A stretch of DNA of 63,395 bases, the filler included, from Reticulomyxa filosa (taxonomy: Eukaryota; Protista; Foraminifera): the NCBI GenBank assembly GCA_000512085.1. It is 23 parts of 23 records of this genome, joined end to end, with 100 filler letters (N's around TTAATTAATTAA, not from the genome) between each part and the next. Parts side by side here need not be neighbours in the genome. Positions count along the whole stretch, not along the records: positions 22,754 to 27,283 come from ASPP01007148.1; 22 more parts are not named here. The stretch is one strand, 5' to 3'. The notes under the pieces were generated by a model, which saw only the letters and a list, made by a program, of their open reading frames with translations, ran no database searches and was not told the origin of the DNA. The translations under genes and the position numbers were made by a program. Below, one piece after another: positions 3,001 through 27,383 of the stretch (within the stretch, counting starts at the first letter, position 1; each line of letters opens with the position of its first letter).

Positions 3001-5221
3001 ATGTCTACAGTGCTTTCATTTTTACTGGATGCGTCAGTATTCTGTAAGGAAGACATGACAAACAAACTATGGGACAAACTAGACAAAGTACACGACTGCC
3101 AATCAGTAAAAGATCTTTTGTATTTAGAGCAAAGTGAATGAGACGAGATTTTCATGCAAATTGGAGAAGCCAAAGCCACAAAACGCAGAATTATGGAAGC
3201 ACTAGATGCTCTCAGTCTGAAATCAGATTTAGGCACTCAGTTAATCAAAAATGATCTTTTTAAGATTTACAATATTAATTTGAACTGTAAAACAATACAA
3301 TCGAATAGATTAAAATCAATTCCACAACCACAAGGTGAATTCCCCTTAGTTGGCTTAATATTATCGTTATAAATTTTGGGGTAGGTTTTTTCATCTTCTC
3401 CCCCCTCCTCCTTCCTAATATGATATTATTTAAAAAATAGAATGTCATCTAGAATACGATGAAAAAGAGGCAATGGAACATGTTATAAAAATCGCAAATG
3501 AACAAACAGAAAAAATTTTGCAACTTTATGTTTACGCACCAAATGAAAATCAAATCGTGGTTAATTTCAAGGATTATTCAAATGGTTTGTTTGTCCCAAA
3601 AAAAAATAAAATCAATTTTTATTTTGCTATGTTGCATATCTATTAAAAAGAGTATATGATAACAGGATATTATCAATTGAAGAATATCGGTGATGATATA
3701 TTTTATGGTGATTTTGAAGTCGAACAAAAGAAATTAAATATTTGTGTCAGTTGTAATGGACAAACCATTTCCCATTTTGTGTCTTCCCAGTCGGTGATTT
3801 CTCTTATTAAAATTCAAAGTGGATCTTCACCCACTTTGAATGAAATTACAATACTGAATCACCTAATTAAGACGACCAATGATTGGACATCTTTTCAACT
3901 TGCAGTTCGTGCTGCAGAGGACATAAGAACAGAGATTCGTGAAGCATTGTCAGGACAAAATAATCTAACAATCAATCACAAACTGATATTTCATCAGTTA
4001 GTTATTATATTTCTTTATAAAAATATACGTAGATGTAGTGTTCTACACAACAACAACAACAACAACAAAGGTATTAAAACGTCTATTAATAATTGACTGG
4101 AGACGAAATTATTTAAACACATTTGATGACAGCAATAAACTGAAAAATGAACTACCTCCGTGGGATTTCTTTGTAATTATGAAGTTCATGTCACAAGAGT
4201 ATGGAACCAATTTGAATGCATCAGTATACAATATATTGACAAAATGCTTAGAAAATTATCAAAAGGTCTCCAACTTATCCCATTTGGATCTCTTCTGTCT
4301 TATTCCATGTTTCAATTACTTGCGTTCTATACAAAGTAACATATCAGATACGCGATTCTTCAATGATCAGAACATCGAATCGCAAGAAGAATTAAAGGAA
4401 AACAATATGAAAGAAATGATACTTGATATTCTGCAAACAGAATTGCGTATTTGTCAATCGAAAGATATTACACCAGAGATATTCACAGAAGCATATGTAT
4501 TTCAATTACTATACATTCAACAAGATCACAAACTATCTCATTCCATTTTGCAATTTCTATTCGAACAAAATGAACAGGTTTGGATTAATATCACAAGTGT
4601 AGATAATAACATAACACGAACCTCAATGCTCGCAGAATATCCTCACAAGATGTTTACACGCAAACTGGTGAGCATCTGCAAAGATATCATTGAACGTGTC
4701 TCCTTTGAAGTGTACATGAAAGTATTTGAGAGTGCGAATCAAACATGAGAGCATTTATCCAAAGTTATCTATTTTTTCTTTGAATTATCACACAACAAAA
4801 ATTATTTTTTATACATTAATAAAAAAAAAATAAAAAACAATAAATTGCAATTTGCTGATGTGACATGGTTTGAAAATGTAAATTGGAAAAAAACATTTGA
4901 ATTGTGAAGAAGTGGAGTATATATTGACCGATTGGTATCAAACATACAAAGATCGGACGTTGAGATGATTGTTTATCAGTTTGGAATTTGCAAAGAGATT
5001 TACTCGCTTCGCATGGATTATTGGGAAAAAGGTGGACGTTTGGATACGTGTAGGCATGGGCAAACGTGGAAAATCAAGCATGACACTGAAAAAATCCGTC
5101 AAAACACGACAAAGCATGTGGAAGAAATCTGTGTGCGATTTAACAGCAGTGATATCGATTGGGAACAAATTGTGTACATTCTTTGGCAATACTATCTATT
5201 ACAAGACAAACAAGATTATGT
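3001..5221 (+). pseudogene. Multi-exon hypothetical gene with N-terminal SAM-like motif, interrupted by three in-frame TGA codons; 3' partial
   Basis: Approximate exons 3001-3334, 3441-3585, 3666-4000, 4071-4763 and 4845-5221 join in frame. SAM-like stretch VKDLLYLEQSE*DEIFMQIGEAKATKRRIMEAL. TGA at 3139, 4746 and 4905; the last intron has no AG acceptor. Confidence 0.6.
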
Positions 5222-5394
5222 NNNNNNNNNNNNNNNNNNNNNNNNNNNNNNNNNNNNNNNNNNNNTTAATTAATTAANNNNNNNNNNNNNNNNNNNNNNN
5301 NNNNNNNNNNNNNNNNNNNNNCGTATACTTTTGCTTGTTCTCGTCATTTGAAAGTAATTTGATTGGTTGACTTGTTTTTGAAACCAATCAAAAG

Positions 5395-6125
5395 ACATTG
5401 GGTTTTGAAAGAATTCAAAAATTACGATGACGAATTGGAATATGTGGACGAATTGCTGAAGTTGGATGTACGCAATAACAGCGCTTGGAATCATCGCTAT
5501 TTTATTATCTCTCAAACCACCGGATTTACTCTTCCAGTCGTGCTGAGAGAAATTAGGTTGGAAGTTTATGTTTTATCTTTCATCTTGTTTTTGATTTTTC
5601 TTTTTTTTTTTTTGGGGGGGGGGGGGGTCATTTTTTTTTTTTTTTAAATTATCATATTGCATTATACATATATGCAATGTATGTGTACATGTTTGCTTGC
5701 ACTTGTACAGTTATTGTCAAACAAAGCTTGGCCAGATGTCAGATAATCAAAGCGCTTGGTATTATTACACGGATTTGATATTGGTGCAATTGAGACAGTT
5801 GACACATGGAAAATATGAAGATAAAACTACTAGTGACACCAGCCCGGGCGAAAAAAGTTGGAAAGTTCATAGATTGGCTCAAATTGAGTGGCTTAAAAAA
5901 CTACTCGTTGCACAGCCCTATTCCGGCCGATGCATTTTATGTTTGATCGATGTTTTATGCGATGACACGTACGCCACTTTGGAAGATGCTATCTTCGCTG
6001 AGGAGCTATGTGATAAACTAATGCTCGAGGTTGACAGAATACGGTATCAATATTATCAGTATTTAAAGGACACTAAGATCAAAAATTGCAAGCTTTCTAG
6101 AAGCCAAACCACAATCAAAAAATAA
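5395..6125 (+). CDS. FNTA: Protein farnesyltransferase/geranylgeranyltransferase-I alpha subunit, 3' exons
   Basis: PPTA repeats RHWVLKEF...[26 protein letters not shown] and DNQSAWYY, C-terminal DRIRYQYY; GT-AG intron 5557-5710. Confidence 0.85.
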
Positions 6126-6885
6126 AACATATAATCAACAATCTTTTTTTCCTTTAAACAAAAAAAAAAAGAGAAAAAGAGGTCATTGTTCTTGTTGATC
6201 TTTTTTAAGTTTTTTTTTTTTTCTTTTGGTCCGCTAATAGTGATTACTTTCAATCATTTCCATTTGAATGTGTTTGTCCGCCATTTTGTTAGTTTCCTTA
6301 CATTGGAGATTTAGTCAATCAGGGCCACATATGCAACAGAAATTTCTATAACTTTTTAATTTTGGTTTTTTTTTTAAAACTGCCTTGCAAGTTTATTAAA
6401 AAAAAAATTTTGAACAAAAAGCATTTTGAATTTTTTGCTTGACTTGTTGGTTGTTGATCAAATAAACACAAAAAAAAAAAAAAAAACGAATACCACATTG
6501 TTAAAAAAGTTGTGAACTGACGGGGCCACAATATCATAATTTTTTCATTCGAAGAGACTACAAAATACATTGGGTCAAGTAAAGCAACAAAAAAATTATA
6601 ACCAGGGGAAAGACTTCAAATGACATCTTTTTTTATAAAAAAAAAAAAAAAAAGTTATATGCTGCATTTTATGTAAGCTTCAACAACTTCCTACAATTGA
6701 AATACAGTAAGGAGAGGAAGTATTTATACAAATAATAATAAAATAATAATAATAATAATTTTTCTTGGTCACAACTTTGCTCTTCCTCGTTTACATCAAA
6801 GGACCACTTTGCGGAAAAATGGATGGAAATAACAAAAAGTGGATGAGGTAGTCATTACATTCCGAGTTCGATTTCGAGATCAGTA

Positions 6886-22600: not shown

Positions 22601-22843
22601 TGTTACAAACACACATATAAATAAATAAGTATATATATGTATATTATATATATNNNNNNNNNNNNNNNNNNNNNNNNNNNNNNNNNNNNNNNNNNNNTTA
22701 ATTAATTAANNNNNNNNNNNNNNNNNNNNNNNNNNNNNNNNNNNNNNNNNNNNAAAAAAAAAAATGTATACGTATTTCTTTTTTTTTTTGTTACTTTCCC
22801 TTTCAAGTTTTTCAACTTTTTCAAACAAATAAAAAAAAAATAC

Positions 22844-23282
22844 CTGTAAGTTGACATTCTTGTCTTCAACTGTAATTTCTTTTGTCAAAAAATCGGCGCC
22901 AATTGTTGCCTTGTGTTCTTGTAGAAATTCTCCATGCACATATTGGTTTATCAATGCCGTTTTGCCAACCCTTTTTTTTTGGTCGTTTTTATAGTTAGGT
23001 TATACACACATATGAATGTATGTATGTGTGTATATGAGGCTGGATTAATGTTTCCCTTTAGGTCGTTGGGAACATATCCTCTTCCTTCTTTCCCTCCCCC
23101 CTCCCCCTTTTGACAACTTCGTGAAAGATAAGCAATACTGAAATAAAAGATATCCCCCTTTTTTTTAACGCTCCCTCCCTACTCTCTTTCTAATACGACA
23201 CATCTCAAACATACCCTGAATCGCCCAAAATGATCACTTTGAGCAAAACTTTCTTTTTTGCTGAAGACACTTTGTTTGGCAT
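22844..23282 (-). CDS. RAB7: Rab7-like small GTPase, exons 1-2; 3' partial
   Basis: Exon 1 (23282-23215) MPNKVSSAKKKVLLKVIILGDSG plus exon 2 (22970-22844) VGKTALINQYVHGEFLQEHKATIGADFLTKEITVEDKNVNLQ; GT-AG intron in matching phase. Confidence 0.88.
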
Positions 23283-23836
23283 ATGAATTGCAATGGATTT
23301 GCTCCTTAATGAATTTTTACCTGAGTGTTTTTTTATACCAACGTGACTTCGAAAATTTTTAACACGTTAAGATATGAAATCTGAGGCAAATTCATCCAAG
23401 ACTTCTAAAAGAAATCATTTTTGACTTATTTTACTAGAATTTGAAAATAAATAATCGCCCAATCTACGAAATTCACGTAAATAAGTTTTATTAACATATT
23501 TGAAAAGTCATTTGGAAAATATATCTAATTAAAATGTCGATATATGCGGATGTCTGTTAGTTGATCACTAGAAGGTAAAACACTTAACAACGAAATAATA
23601 CAGGCAGAATATAAAAATAAGATGCGGTCAATAAGCTTTTTTTGGCATACAGAGAAAGATAATTTTCAATACAGCTTCGAAAGTAAAAAAGTAAAATTTT
23701 CAGACACTGCGAATACTGCAAAGAGAAATAGCGAAAAAAAAATAGTTTGGAATCAGGACAAAAAAAAAGAATTAAAAGGAGCAACAACAAAAAAACTGTT
23801 TACTCTCATTAACATTCCTGGAAAAGCTTTGATATT

Positions 23837-24677
23837 TTACTTCAATGAGCGCACTTGTACTTTTGCTTGTAACGTTTCTTCATTCCACTCTCCTAATACG
23901 ACATTATATACCTTCCATGCTTCTTCATAGCATGTAAGTGCACTTTGGTTTTCCCCTTTTCGTTTGAAGGCCAAGCCCAAATTCCAACAGGAATCCCCGA
24001 CATCTCTGTTGACAATTCCAAGTAATTTTTTTCTTATTTTCAACGCAAATCCATGATATTGAATAGCCTTGTCATAGTATTCCTGATTAAAGTAAGTGTT
24101 TCCAAAATTGTAATAAGTGTTGCCAATATGAGAGTGAATAGTTCCAAGAGTGTGTAGATAAACTCGTAAAGCTTGTTCATAGCATTCAATTGCCTTTTCA
24201 TACTCTCTGTTGCTCTGATGAGCATTACCTAAATTGTTGTACAAATCCCCAACGTAAGGATGTCTAGATCCAAAGTTGTCAATAGCAAGTCGCAAAGCTT
24301 TTTGCAAAAAGACGATGGCACTTCTAAACATGTAAACATTGGACTGATATTCAGCCTTGGCCTCCAAATCTTGAATTTGGACAAAAATATCATGATGCAC
24401 TTCGGCATTCCACTGAACGAGTGAAACCGAGTTCCTCAACAGTGGAGGGACAAAGGCATTATTTGTAACAAATAATTGTGTTGTAATATTGACATGCTTT
24501 CCTTTGCATTGAATTTCACAATTGACAACATATACATTTCCATCAATATTTATTTCATTTAGTGCTATTGTTTTACTTTTTAGTACATAAACAGTGTACC
24601 CTCCAAATTGTTTTATTTTAGTTAGTGACATATGAAATGAAAAAGTTTTGGAGCCATTATTATTATCATTATTATTA

Positions 24678-24714
<37 letters not shown>

Positions 24715-25977
24715 ATTAATATTAGTGTTAACATTGTCATCCATTGCAATGGATGATTTGCTTATGGCTTTTTGCCATGCAGAAATATTATATGAAACAA
24801 CAACCACTCCTTGCTCATTTTCGTGTAGCATTTGCATTACCGTTTTCACTGCCTCCGCATTGGACTTTTTCCAGTCTCTGTTCCAATGCGTTTTGAAGTC
24901 CAAAGTGCCTGCCATGATGTCCAATCGTATTTTATGTGTTGGATTTGGAAGCAGATACGTCTCAACACCTCGATCGAACACATGTGATGACGCGAGGCGT
25001 CGGACGATATCTTGCACACTTTGTTTGGAGCCATTGCTTTGAATATCCTGACAAAGCGTTGAAATGACAAGACTCTCTTTTCCACTGGCTCCACTTTTTT
25101 TGGAAAGAGGAATTGTCACACCCATTGCAAATACATCTGCATTTTGATTACACCACACTCCATTTCCATTTCCATTTCCATTTCCATTTTGATTTTTATT
25201 ATATTCTTCTGACTCTGTTTTATATGACATATGAATCAATATCTTTGGCTTTCCTTCAAAATAACAAGAATCCTCAATCAATTCCATTTCAATCTCTTTC
25301 AAATTGTTCATTGCATGATCACTGCTAATTTGTAATGTATGTCCATTGGAGCCATTGGAATGATGATATTCACACCATACAATGATCAATCCATCATAAT
25401 CCATCCCATTGTCTGTCAATCCCAAAAGATGTCTCCAAATGAAATTCTTCAATTCACTCAATGTCAAACATTCCATGTCTCTGTTTCGTGCATTGAAATT
25501 GTTAAATGCCCGATAGCCAAAGTGCAATTCAAATAGCGCTTGCAATATTCCCAAGTCTTGTCTCATACTTTCCAAGTTATCTCGCAAATCACTTTGTATT
25601 GCTCCCATTATTAATACCAATCCATTTTTTATTTTATATTCGTGCTTTGTTCTTTTTGTTTCTTCGTCTTTTTTTTCTTTTTATTTTGTTTTTTTTTTTT
25701 TGAGGGAAGAGAGCAGGCTTGACACAACTGGACATAAATTACATGAACACAAACCTTGGAAGTGTGCTCGAAAATTAAGTGGAGAGATATTCTGGAGCTG
25801 TTGATCGCTTTCAATGTCGTGGCCATTCCAATCGGTTATATTCACAATCATATTCTCTTGACCGTCGTTCTTGCTCACTGCAATTATTTGCTCTTTCAAA
25901 TGTTTGAGAGTTAAACTTGTCAAATGAAGCGTATATTGTTCTGAACCTATCATCACAAGAACTTCAAATGGAGGCAT
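23837..25977 (-). CDS. PB1/ubiquitin-like + caspase-fold (peptidase C14-like, probably inactive) + uncharacterised domain + TPR protein
   Basis: Exon 1 has ITDWNGHDIESDQQL (PB1 acidic-motif-like). p20-like KNGLVLI...QDLGILQALFELHFGY...LTLSELKNF...YDGLIIVWCEYH...FEGKPKILI; p10-like NADVF...SLVISTLCQ. C-terminal TPRs (HPYVGDLYNNLGNAH...YEKAIECYEQAL). One frameshift at the (AAT)n tract ~24660-24720. Confidence 0.75.
24656..24722. repeat. (AAT/ATT)n microsatellite inside a coding region
   Basis: Direct reading; coincides with the frame change between ORFs 24622-25620 and 23837-24631. Confidence 0.9.
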
Positions 25978-26894
25978 TTTCCTTTCAATTTTTATTTCTC
26001 AAAACTTTATGCTAACTTTATTATCAACTTTTTATCCCTTTTTTTTAAAAAAAGACGCAACGACAGGTTTTTAATATAAAAACACGGGAAAAAATCGAGA
26101 TTAAACCAATTTAGTGATATTTGTGTTGCTTTAACAGATAGGCAAATAATTTGAAAAAATTAAGCTTCATATTTGTTTGTGATGTAGACAACAGTGATTT
26201 TTCAGTAATATTTGCAGTGGTTAGAATTAATATTTTCAATGACCAATTGTTCAGTTTCATTTTTAAAACTTGATTTATCAAGAATTGCTTGAATTTAATA
26301 ATTCAGAAAAGGAATTGTGCTTGTGATCATATCTCATTTCGTTTAAACTTACACAATGACGTGCATTTTTTGTTTTTTATTGCTATACACAAAATAGCCT
26401 CTGATTTAATAATATTTAATATTAATAGTAGTTTAAGATATTTCGAGAACATGTGTAACACTTTTTTTTTATATTTTATTTTAGTTCCTCTCAAAGTTAC
26501 AATAAAACAGTGATTCACCAAAGGATGTTATGTAACTGTTTTTTAATACGAGTTGTTCTTTAAACATTGAGAATTTTTGGTTTCATTGAACTCCACCAAC
26601 TGAAACAAATAATATCAACTTTAAAAAGATATTCACAAGACTTGAATTACACCTCTTCCATTTTTTTCAAGAATTGCGTTGCTAATTTGTCACCACTGCT
26701 CCTCTCTTCCATCTGGATGCGGAGAACAAGCGAACATTTTTTGAAACAATTGGATCCATATTAAAAAAGGGACCACTACAAAAAAAAAAAAACTAGAAAA
26801 TTTAAAAAAGCATTAAATTGAAATTTGAAAAATATTGGATAACTATAAGTGAACAAATACAACACGAATTTTTTTTTTTTTTTAAAAAAAAGAG

Positions 26895-27260
26895 TCAGTC
26901 AAGTTGAGCAGCGTCAGAAACCAATTGCCGTAAGTCAAGAGAGCGACCAAGAACGGACGACAAAGAGTGGTCATCATCGGGAACGACTTTGAGAGCGAAC
27001 AGAACATGATTAGTCTGAACAAGTTGAACGACCTCGCTCAAAGGAATGACGGAGTCATTAGTGCCATGAACAATTACAAGTTTGTGTTTGTATGTGCTTT
27101 TGTCCACCCCCAAATGCATCCATCCTACCCCACTCTCACTCCCACTTTCATTCTCATTCTCATTTTTCTTATCCCTCCCCCTAACAATGTCACTCCTTTC
27201 AAACGGATACATTATCGACATCACCTTCGTATACGCCGGACATAACAACACCGTCGGTCC
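26895..27260 (-). CDS. Alpha/beta-hydrolase, last exon
   Basis: LVIVHGTNDSVIPL (catalytic Asp motif) and VPDDDHSL (catalytic His). Confidence 0.75.
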   Translation of the reverse strand, partial: GPTVLLCPAYTKVMSIMYPFERSDIVRGRDKKNENENESGSESGVGWMHLGVDKSTYKHKLVIVHGTNDSVIPLSEVVQLVQTNHVLFALKVVPDDDHSLSSVLGRSLDLRQLVSDAAQLD

Positions 27261-27383
27261 TATTTTTAATGTATACGTATATANNNNNNNNNNNNNNNNN
27301 NNNNNNNNNNNNNNNNNNNNNNNNNNNTTAATTAATTAANNNNNNNNNNNNNNNNNNNNNNNNNNNNNNNNNNNNNNNNNNNN

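Follow-up and report, generated by a model that had tools for sequence, protein, structure and literature searches.

Animal-type caspases are usually regarded as an animal invention; what, then, is a gene with a caspase-like middle part in the freshwater foraminiferan Reticulomyxa filosa, and would its product be an enzyme, an inactive scaffold, or nothing functional at all? The gene lies within a stretch of 63,395 nucleotides joined from 23 parts of the R. filosa genome (assembly GCA_000512085.1), referred to here as the window, on contig ASPP01007148.1 (positions 22754-27283), a complete 4530-bp piece with a G+C content of 28-39%. Taken as a whole, the gene runs on the minus strand from an ATG at 25977 to the stop codon at 23837-23839. 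Its modules follow in the order beta-grasp domain, caspase-fold domain, helical module of about 70 residues, Asn tract, beta-rich module of about 90 residues, and tetratricopeptide repeats (TPRs). An original prediction, made from the sequence alone, had described a PB1-like domain, an inactive caspase, an unnamed domain, and TPRs joined in a sensor-like scaffold. The follow-up analysis indicates that the gene is one copy of a large R. filosa family, that its caspase is probably dead, and that any product is probably a non-catalytic scaffold.

The caspase-fold domain occupies 24940..25635 (-), corresponding to residues 89-320 of the GenBank protein ETO27607.1 (P0001). All of the p20-like strings (KNGLVLI at 25609-25629, DLGILQALFELHFGY at 25513-25557, LTLSELKNF at 25441-25467, YDGLIIV at 25378-25398, and FEGKPKILI at 25234-25260) and p10-like strings (NADVF at 25129-25143 and SLVISTLCQ at 25048-25074) that first suggested a caspase were found in the minus-strand translation where they had been placed. 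Compared with the Pfam profile Peptidase_C14 (PF00656), this protein scores below the cut-off (E 0.0048; 17.1 bits against 21.4), with profile positions 5-208 of 233 covered. Its paralogs P0036, P0034, P0027, P0041, P0050, and P0039 exceed the cut-off at 34-70 bits, and this protein matches them with E-values of 1e-22 to 1e-37, that for P0036 being 2e-29. Paralogs that keep the catalytic His-Cys dyad match Peptidase_C14 at 3e-19 (P0036), 3e-17 (P0050), 2.5e-15 (P0041), and 2e-12 (P0034), and are matched by this protein at 1e-22 to 1e-30. A phmmer search of the caspase open reading frame (ORF) alone against PDB sequences gave chance matches only. When a profile of 30 paralog caspase domains was searched against the PDB, all 55 of the 55 matches with E up to 1 were caspases, among them Dronc (3e-4) and caspase-3 (1.5e-3). 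By ESM features, 29 of the 30 nearest Atlas clusters are caspase-3/7-like, with a score of 0.94.

The predicted structure agrees with these sequence matches. An AlphaFold2 (AF2) model built on the 30-paralog alignment reached a predicted local distance difference test score (pLDDT) of 70 and a predicted template modelling score (pTM) of 0.71, with strands and helices in caspase order and low pLDDT in the linker stretch (model residues 159-169). In Foldseek, the top 50 matches of this model are all caspases or cFLIP-L, with E-values down to 5e-6. VIA-align, run with the same model over 48,161 representative chains, gave CED-3 a Z-score of 12.6 (169 residues, root-mean-square deviation 3.2), followed by Sf-caspase-1 (12.3), Dronc (12.3), caspase-4 (12.2), caspase-9 (12.0), entries of caspase-3 and caspase-8 (11.6), and cFLIP-L (11.2). 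MALT1 scores 10.2, metacaspase-4 9.8, legumain-type proteins and GPI8 about 9, and both Yca1 and SAVED-CHAT 8.3. Identity in these structure comparisons is 13-20% to caspases, as against 7-12% to the paracaspase, metacaspases, legumain, GPI8, and CHAT. Because caspases lead the structure ranking, the modelled domain is best classed as caspase-like rather than paracaspase-, metacaspase-, or CHAT-like. The claim of an animal-caspase-like fold in a protist is thereby upheld: the profile matches only caspases, and both structural searches rank them first. The Foldseek comparison of the middle domain, suggested at the outset as a check, recovered the caspase fold rather than an absence of caspase-fold hits.

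Members of the animal caspase family (C14A) share with the R. filosa domain the same fold and order of elements. The R. filosa family also has in common with them a GKPK box ahead of the nucleophile strand, as well as a small-subunit-like D-x-F...GS-x-F-x-x-x-x-C-Q pattern. They differ in having an intact dyad, the QACxG motif, and a linker Asp, whereas the copy in the window has Tyr at both catalytic positions and neither the motif nor the Asp. In addition, the R. filosa gene lacks a CARD or DED prodomain and places TPRs downstream of the caspase domain, unlike animal caspases.

To locate the catalytic positions, the family profile was aligned by hidden Markov model (HMM) with Dronc (THG) and caspase-3 (SHG); G[H/Y]G falls on [S/T]HG, and the five residues past GKPKxxx fall on QACRG. 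In this copy, the catalytic His is replaced by Tyr178 (codon TAT, 25366-25368 (-)) and the catalytic Cys by Tyr226 (codon TAT, 25222-25224 (-)), the latter through the alignment of GKPKIFIKItYke to GKPKLFIIQACRG. The reading of SHG as E-Y-H in the original prediction is therefore correct. For QACRG it was right that the catalytic Cys is gone, while the string given, HMSYK, lies one residue off and should be M-S-Y-K-T, with Met replacing the Gln of QACxG. By our reading of the alignment, the family, dyad-intact paralogs included, does not conserve the Arg in the first motif of the S1 pocket. Between the two halves, the linker ESEEYNKNQ-(NG)5-VWCNQ contains no Asp, as had been noted; its (NG)5 stretch is encoded by an (AATGGA)5 repeat at 25159..25189 (-) (period 6, 5.2 copies, 100% matches). 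Since both catalytic residues are Tyr, this copy cannot, judging from its sequence, cleave through the caspase mechanism. Both TAT codons are a single transition away from CAT and TGT, respectively. It could be argued that the domain is still a protease acting through other residues, such as the two His beside Tyr178 (WCEYHH) or the Cys that precedes it, given that Cys176, His179, and His180 adjoin the lost His position. This is extremely improbable, as there is no Cys or Ser at or beside the nucleophile position (MSYKT) and 14 family-conserved residues are altered as well. To our knowledge, no such catalytic rescue is known among clan CD peptidases.

The architecture is not singular. An exhaustive HMMER search with residues 1-392 as query (E < 1e-3) recovered 98 cluster representatives, of which 31 fall below 1e-30, and the gene in the window is one copy of this family. 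All 30 of the 30 named relatives that were looked up belong to R. filosa, and the family is known almost only from this species. A word-based homolog search returned the protein itself only; full-length paralogs lay outside its length window. Among the representatives, the His column holds Tyr in 30 and His in 24, and the Cys column holds Tyr in 31 and Cys in 11. Tyr is the commonest substitute at both positions family-wide, for which either AT-biased mutation or a Tyr/Tyr state that is shared and selected could be responsible. The proposed survey of paralogs for an intact dyad was successful: of the 56 representatives in which a residue aligns with the catalytic Cys, seven keep both residues (P0034, P0036, P0041, P0050, P0077, and the metagenomic P0091 and P0093). 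An xxCRG motif is read in four of these seven, the last two positions differing in the rest. A tree of 48 caspase domains is mostly unresolved, with catalytic states scattered over it, and its starred branches alone force at least four changes of the intact state. About 30 representatives lack the caspase domain only, the other modules being kept on the domain map, and the TPR array varies across the family from 172 to about 760 aa.

Three of the representatives, P0085, P0091, and P0093, are of ENA metagenome origin. The dyad-intact caspase domains of P0091 and P0093 (Peptidase_C14 E about 1e-15) are fused to ankyrin repeats, and these two are the nearest family relatives found beyond the R. 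filosa assembly. P0085 (ENA ERZ26696514; positions 5001-6581 of a 9.8-kb contig), which is not from Reticulomyxa, has a caspase-like domain with the His kept and the Cys changed to Tyr, fused directly to TPR_12. Its contig is gene-dense, with RecA, ankyrin-repeat genes, and a DNA polymerase B exonuclease fragment alongside, and could derive from a bacterium or a giant virus. Within R. filosa, the dyad-intact P0041 (ETO31498.1) has a weak match to a TRAF-type zinc finger (E 8e-4, below cut-off), and P0053 (ETO33050.1), a Tyr/Trp copy, carries a TMEM43 domain past its TPRs (E 1.4e-7).

Whether the caspase and TPR parts form one gene is complicated by a break in the reading frame. Exon 2, which starts at 25676 (-), spans the caspase-like domain and the helical module of about 70 residues (24724..24939 (-); residues 321-392 of P0001) and runs into an (AAT)n microsatellite that encodes the Asn tract (24656..24724 (-); Tandem Repeats Finder: period 3, 23.3 copies, 88% matches, 2% indels). 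Within this tract, at 24678-24681, the repeat falls one base short (aat aat aa- aat). Past it, the caspase frame reads nonsense up to a stop at 24622-24624, and the TPR frame, open from 24679, continues for 264 codons without a stop. As assembled, the two parts are in different frames and are entered in GenBank as two genes, ETO27607.1 and ETO27606.1; the upstream spliced GenBank model and the downstream ORF were analysed as separate parts. The (AAT)n frameshift of the original prediction thus corresponds more exactly to this one-base deficit. Its single caspase-TPR protein is supported as to the origin of the gene but does not hold for the frames as assembled or for the GenBank annotation.

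Support for a single origin comes from the paralogs. When all 98 representatives were mapped with jackhmmer profiles seeded by the five modules of this gene, more than 35 were found to hold all five in the same order within a single ORF. For instance, P0004 (661 aa, 44% identical) has a gene span of 2054 nt with one small intron. In P0002, a single frame runs from the end of the caspase domain through both middle modules to the TPRs. The two ORFs in the window are therefore parts of one ancestral gene, and not the separate caspase and TPR genes that had been named as the finding that would speak against the prediction. That the two parts are nevertheless independent genes, as in GenBank, agrees with the difference in frame and the separate gene models. 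We consider this very improbable given the paralog ORFs. In addition, the conserved beta-rich module begins about 15 codons past the break and in paralogs is always preceded by the helical module. The start of ETO27606.1 also gives no support to a separate gene. In this model (P0003; 23837-24540 (-)), the first 35 or so residues (MEMYMLSIVKFNAKES...) are an out-of-frame reading of the beta-rich module, after which a predicted intron restores the frame. Since it is out of frame across a conserved module owing to the upstream break, this start is an annotation artefact.

Splicing does not account for the break. An intron from aat|gttaac, the only upstream GT, to ttggag|, the only AG, would bridge it in the wrong phase. 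A 29-nt intron (gtcactaac...ttggag) is in phase, but it removes the conserved Q-F-G-G of the beta-rich module and keeps the nonsense KIIIMIIIMAPKLFHFI tail. No GT..AG pair of correct phase bypasses the frame break without losing the conserved FGGY. An error in the draft assembly, or else a lesion of very recent date, is the more likely cause of the break; an old lesion is less likely.

On a rival reading, the frameshift is genuine and the whole locus a dead pseudogene, with a product ending in the Asn tract and with caspase-like and TPR parts that have no function. The state of the caspase domain bears on this reading. At the 47 conserved columns, defined as positions shared by at least 85% of 30 aligned caspase domains, this copy deviates at 14, which ranks it first of the 30, the median being 6%. 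Its terminal branch in the caspase-domain tree measures 1.42 against a median of 0.65. That no other of the 30 domains is as degenerate, and that this one has the longest ordinary terminal branch, is as expected of a pseudogene. So is the frame break inside the gene, which GenBank could model only as two fragments, and the size of the family would permit redundant copies. Decay is, however, limited to the caspase domain: the conserved residues changed number 0 of 6 in the beta-grasp domain, 0 of 11 in the helical module, and 1 of 14 in the beta-rich module. Moreover, the downstream frame of 264 codons is free of stops in DNA of about 33% G+C. The sole lesion changes the length of a 69-nt trinucleotide repeat by one base, and such a repeat on a draft contig would be a typical site of assembly error. 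A dead locus is thus rather unlikely, though it carries some weight.

A proposed explanation for the confined decay is the piecemeal loss of the caspase module. Trees were built separately for the beta-rich module, the N-terminal domain, and the helical module, and in all three the nearest relatives of this copy are P0004, P0031, P0032, and P0033, with SH-like approximate likelihood ratio test (SH-aLRT) values of 82-92. P0004 is a caspase-bearing Tyr/Tyr copy, and P0031 to P0033, three of the four nearest relatives, are without a caspase domain. In P0031 the gene span is 1362 nt, and therefore no caspase exon is hidden in an intron. These observations suggest that the caspase module is dispensable and has been lost piecemeal in the family, with this copy as an intermediate, which is a reading and not a proof. 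The degeneracy of the domain together with its caspase-less relatives fits module loss at least as well as it fits a tuned decoy. Under this scenario, the family ancestor would have carried an active caspase, with the His, the Cys, and a motif of the xxCRG type surviving in a few paralogs. Repeated losses would then have removed the catalytic residues and, in some lineages, the caspase domain as a whole. Because of these repeated losses, the working core of the family would comprise the beta-grasp domain, the middle modules, and the TPRs.

The first part of this putative core, the N-terminal beta-grasp domain, is encoded by exon 1 (25755..25977 (-)), which contains residues 1-74 and the first base of codon 75 and is used by the GenBank model P0001. 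It is followed by a 78-nt GT..AG intron of phase 1 at 25677..25754 (-), with the donor AG|GTTTGT at 25755/25754, and the GenBank model joins ...HFQ to EKKDEE. The intron is required since exon 1, read unspliced, meets a stop at 25681. The GenBank model agrees with it, as do introns of about 65-90 nt at the same site in P0004 and P0031, directly past the ..YFQ end of the N-terminal domain. An alternative in-phase acceptor is possible at 25662/25663.

A profile of 45 paralog N-termini matched Bem1 PB1 best among PDB sequences (E 0.005-0.007), with ISG15 next. The AF2 model (pLDDT 81) has the order bb-a-b-a-b of a beta-grasp fold and finds Bem1 PB1 at rank 1 in Foldseek (E 3.5e-3, TM 0.67). In VIA-align, the CIDE-N domain of FSP27 (Z 9.2), Par3-NTD (8.9), and DREP3 (8.5) precede Bem1 PB1 (8.3). 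The PB1 domains of Bem1, MEK5, MEKK3, p62, NBR1, Par6, and Cdc24 score 7.4-8.3, and many PB1, CIDE, and ubiquitin-like domains score 7-8. No PB1 (PF00564; E < 1) or CIDE-N match was found in the Pfam scan of this protein. The family keeps an acidic D-x-x-G-x-x-I-E-T-D stretch at the site of the PB1 OPCA motif, weaker than the canonical OPCA. A Lys in strand 1 occurs in 24 of 45 paralogs and is Glu in this copy; at both positions 5 and 13, where paralogs mostly have Lys, this copy has Glu. The predicted PB1-like N-terminus therefore stands in part: the fold is a beta-grasp with Bem1 PB1 as its best sequence and Foldseek match, while CIDE-N and Par3-NTD score equally or slightly higher in VIA-align. 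"PB1-like" is a fair label for the modelled domain. In size and order of elements, it resembles the beta-grasp of PB1 (Bem1, Par6/aPKC, p62, NBR1) and of CIDE-N (DFF40/45, FSP27), from which it differs in having no Pfam match and E-values of 0.003-0.007 only. PB1, CIDE-N, and Par3-NTD are all domains that pair head-to-tail or polymerise.

Between the caspase domain and the TPRs, what had been taken for one unnamed domain is indeed present but consists of two conserved modules. Relatives of both were sought in the PDB with profiles, in Pfam by scanning 49 members, and in the ESM Atlas. The first, the helical module (labelled "unk"), has the signature LDFKxHWNxxWxKxNxEAxKxVxxM..NEQG and is kept in 65 family members, whether the caspase domain is present or absent; it has no PDB, Pfam, or Atlas match. 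The second, the beta-rich module (labelled "beta"; 24356..24631 (-)), forms the first 92 residues of the downstream ORF and has the signature FGEY..YVIK...INIDGNVYAI.CEIQCK..NITTQLFVT....W. It is the best-conserved part of the family, with a mean column identity of 60% and invariant G, Y, and W, and in this copy is 47% identical to that of P0002 and up to 64% to that of P0032. No significant PDB, Pfam, or Atlas match was obtained for it, a match to a left-handed beta-helix (QdtC) at E 0.23 not being evidence. The C-terminal TPRs are as predicted, with Pfam matches to TPR_10 (E 4e-23; 81.1 bits against 27.5) and TPR_12 (E 4e-22; 78.5 against 30.1). The array, of about four kinesin-light-chain-type repeats, occupies 23837..24355 (-) including the stop codon. 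Its 172 aa equal the length of the array in P0004, the nearest caspase-bearing paralog.

The type of these repeats, TPR_10/TPR_12 (KLC/NPHP3), invites a reading in which the family are cytoskeletal or cargo adaptors unrelated to death or immunity, the caspase fold being inherited and now structural. R. filosa is known for massive microtubule transport, the conserved family core omits the caspase domain, and most copies appear from their residues to be catalytically dead, all of which would suit such adaptors. In contrast, none of the scanned members has a motor, cargo, or cytoskeletal domain, and some members are dyad-intact and pass Peptidase_C14. Furthermore, a large, fast-diverging family with TPR arrays of such different lengths looks more like a recognition family. 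An adaptor role for the family is thus unlikely.

If a product of this copy is made, it would most likely be a non-catalytic scaffold, with the TPRs binding a partner or ligand and the beta-grasp domain pairing head-to-tail with paralogs. The dead caspase domain would at most offer an active paralog a surface on which to dimerise, in the way that cFLIP serves caspase-8. cFLIP-L likewise has the caspase fold without the dyad and ranks eighth in both Foldseek (3h13, E 4e-5) and VIA-align (Z 11.2). It also carries Tyr in place of the catalytic Cys. However, cFLIP has tandem DEDs and pairs with caspase-8, whereas the R. filosa gene has a beta-grasp N-terminus that is not a DED, and a TPR C-terminus; dyad loss in the R. 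filosa family arose independently of cFLIP. By analogy, a cFLIP-like role as a decoy or scaffold is plausible, and competes with the simple decay of a redundant copy.

Several points weigh against the scaffold interpretation. The proposed roles in scaffolding, dimerisation, and oligomerisation are drawn by analogy, and the caspase model is of middling confidence. For the N-terminal model, the Z-scores do not separate PB1 from CIDE-N, Par3-NTD, and other ubiquitin-like folds, and Glu5 and Glu13 could weaken head-to-tail pairing. The frame break may be genuine and this copy a pseudogene. Lastly, the domain trees are short and mostly unresolved, with few branches that reach 95, and the repeated losses and caspase-less sisters have moderate support.

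Combinations of a caspase fold with repeats are also found in bacterial CHAT proteins, in TPR-CHAT/Csx29 of type III-E CRISPR systems, and in prokaryotic orthocaspases with TPR or WD40 repeats, where they are linked to defence or cell death. Csx29 has its TPRs at the N-terminus, and CHAT-TPR enzymes are active. The R. filosa domain differs from CHAT in structural score (Z 8.3 for SAVED-CHAT against 12.6 at the top of the ranking), in the absence of both a sequence match and the dyad, and in domain order. Because of the low structural rank, the lack of a sequence match, and the different order, the caspase-TPR likeness would represent a convergent pairing and not membership in the CHAT-TPR group. 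NLR/STAND sensors share with the R. filosa family an N-terminal interaction or effector part, variable C-terminal repeats, and a large lineage-specific expansion. They contain a central NACHT or NB-ARC domain, in place of which the R. filosa gene has two small unnamed modules, and Pfam scans of this gene and 18 paralogs found no P-loop NTPase. A more far-reaching proposal is that the family forms an NTPase-free recognition and cell-death system in this syncytial, self-fusing foraminifer. In such a system, diversified TPR arrays would detect infection or non-self, and the PB1/CIDE-N-like domains would bring these sensors together as polymers; the few dyad-intact members would be executioners, and the many Tyr/Tyr members, this copy among them, brakes or decoys of the cFLIP kind. 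This we hold to be quite unlikely; if true, a caspase-based death or allorecognition network would have arisen outside animals.

The caspase-TPR gene is flanked by ordinary nuclear genes. To its left, at 22844-23281 (-), a Rab7-like small GTPase is represented by its first two exons and runs off the left end of the contig; MPNKVSSAKKKVLLKVIILGDSG is followed by a GTATGT..AG intron and by GVGKTALINQYVHGEF...KATIGADFLTKE, with a Pfam Ras match (E 1.6e-6) on the second exon. To its right, 26895-27251 (-) encodes the C-terminal end of an alpha/beta-hydrolase-like protein truncated at the contig's right end; it shows the motifs ..HGTNDSVIP.. and ..DDDHSL.. and a weak Peptidase_S9 match (E 0.0056, below cut-off).

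The presence of caspase-like proteins in Reticulomyxa is not new. Klim et al. (2018; PMC5982838) describe such proteins as branching with animal caspases, and three further papers use a Reticulomyxa caspase homolog as an outgroup (PMC10959488, PMC11463336, PMC11251625). In UniProt, several paralogs are labelled "Peptidase C14 caspase domain-containing protein". The 425-aa protein of this gene, ETO27607.1, which matches the window at 100% identity, bears the name "asparagine-rich protein" and lacks a precomputed Pfam domain. A literature search for a caspase-TPR family in protists gave nothing relevant, and in the consulted portions of the literature searched no description was found of the beta-grasp/TPR architecture, the family size, the dyad loss, or the caspase-less copies.

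The interest of the locus rests more on the family than on this copy, which is itself probably damaged. Reticulomyxa is the repeatedly cited protist exception among caspase-bearing organisms, as an outgroup sequence only, and the locus places these homologs in a family of about 100 representatives with a fixed, sensor-like architecture. This calls for caution wherever one "R. filosa caspase" alone serves as the outgroup. Two conserved modules without a known fold are defined, which are the best-kept parts of the family. Within one genome, the family offers a natural series from enzyme to pseudoenzyme to loss of the domain, and a candidate non-animal parallel to caspase-8 and cFLIP.

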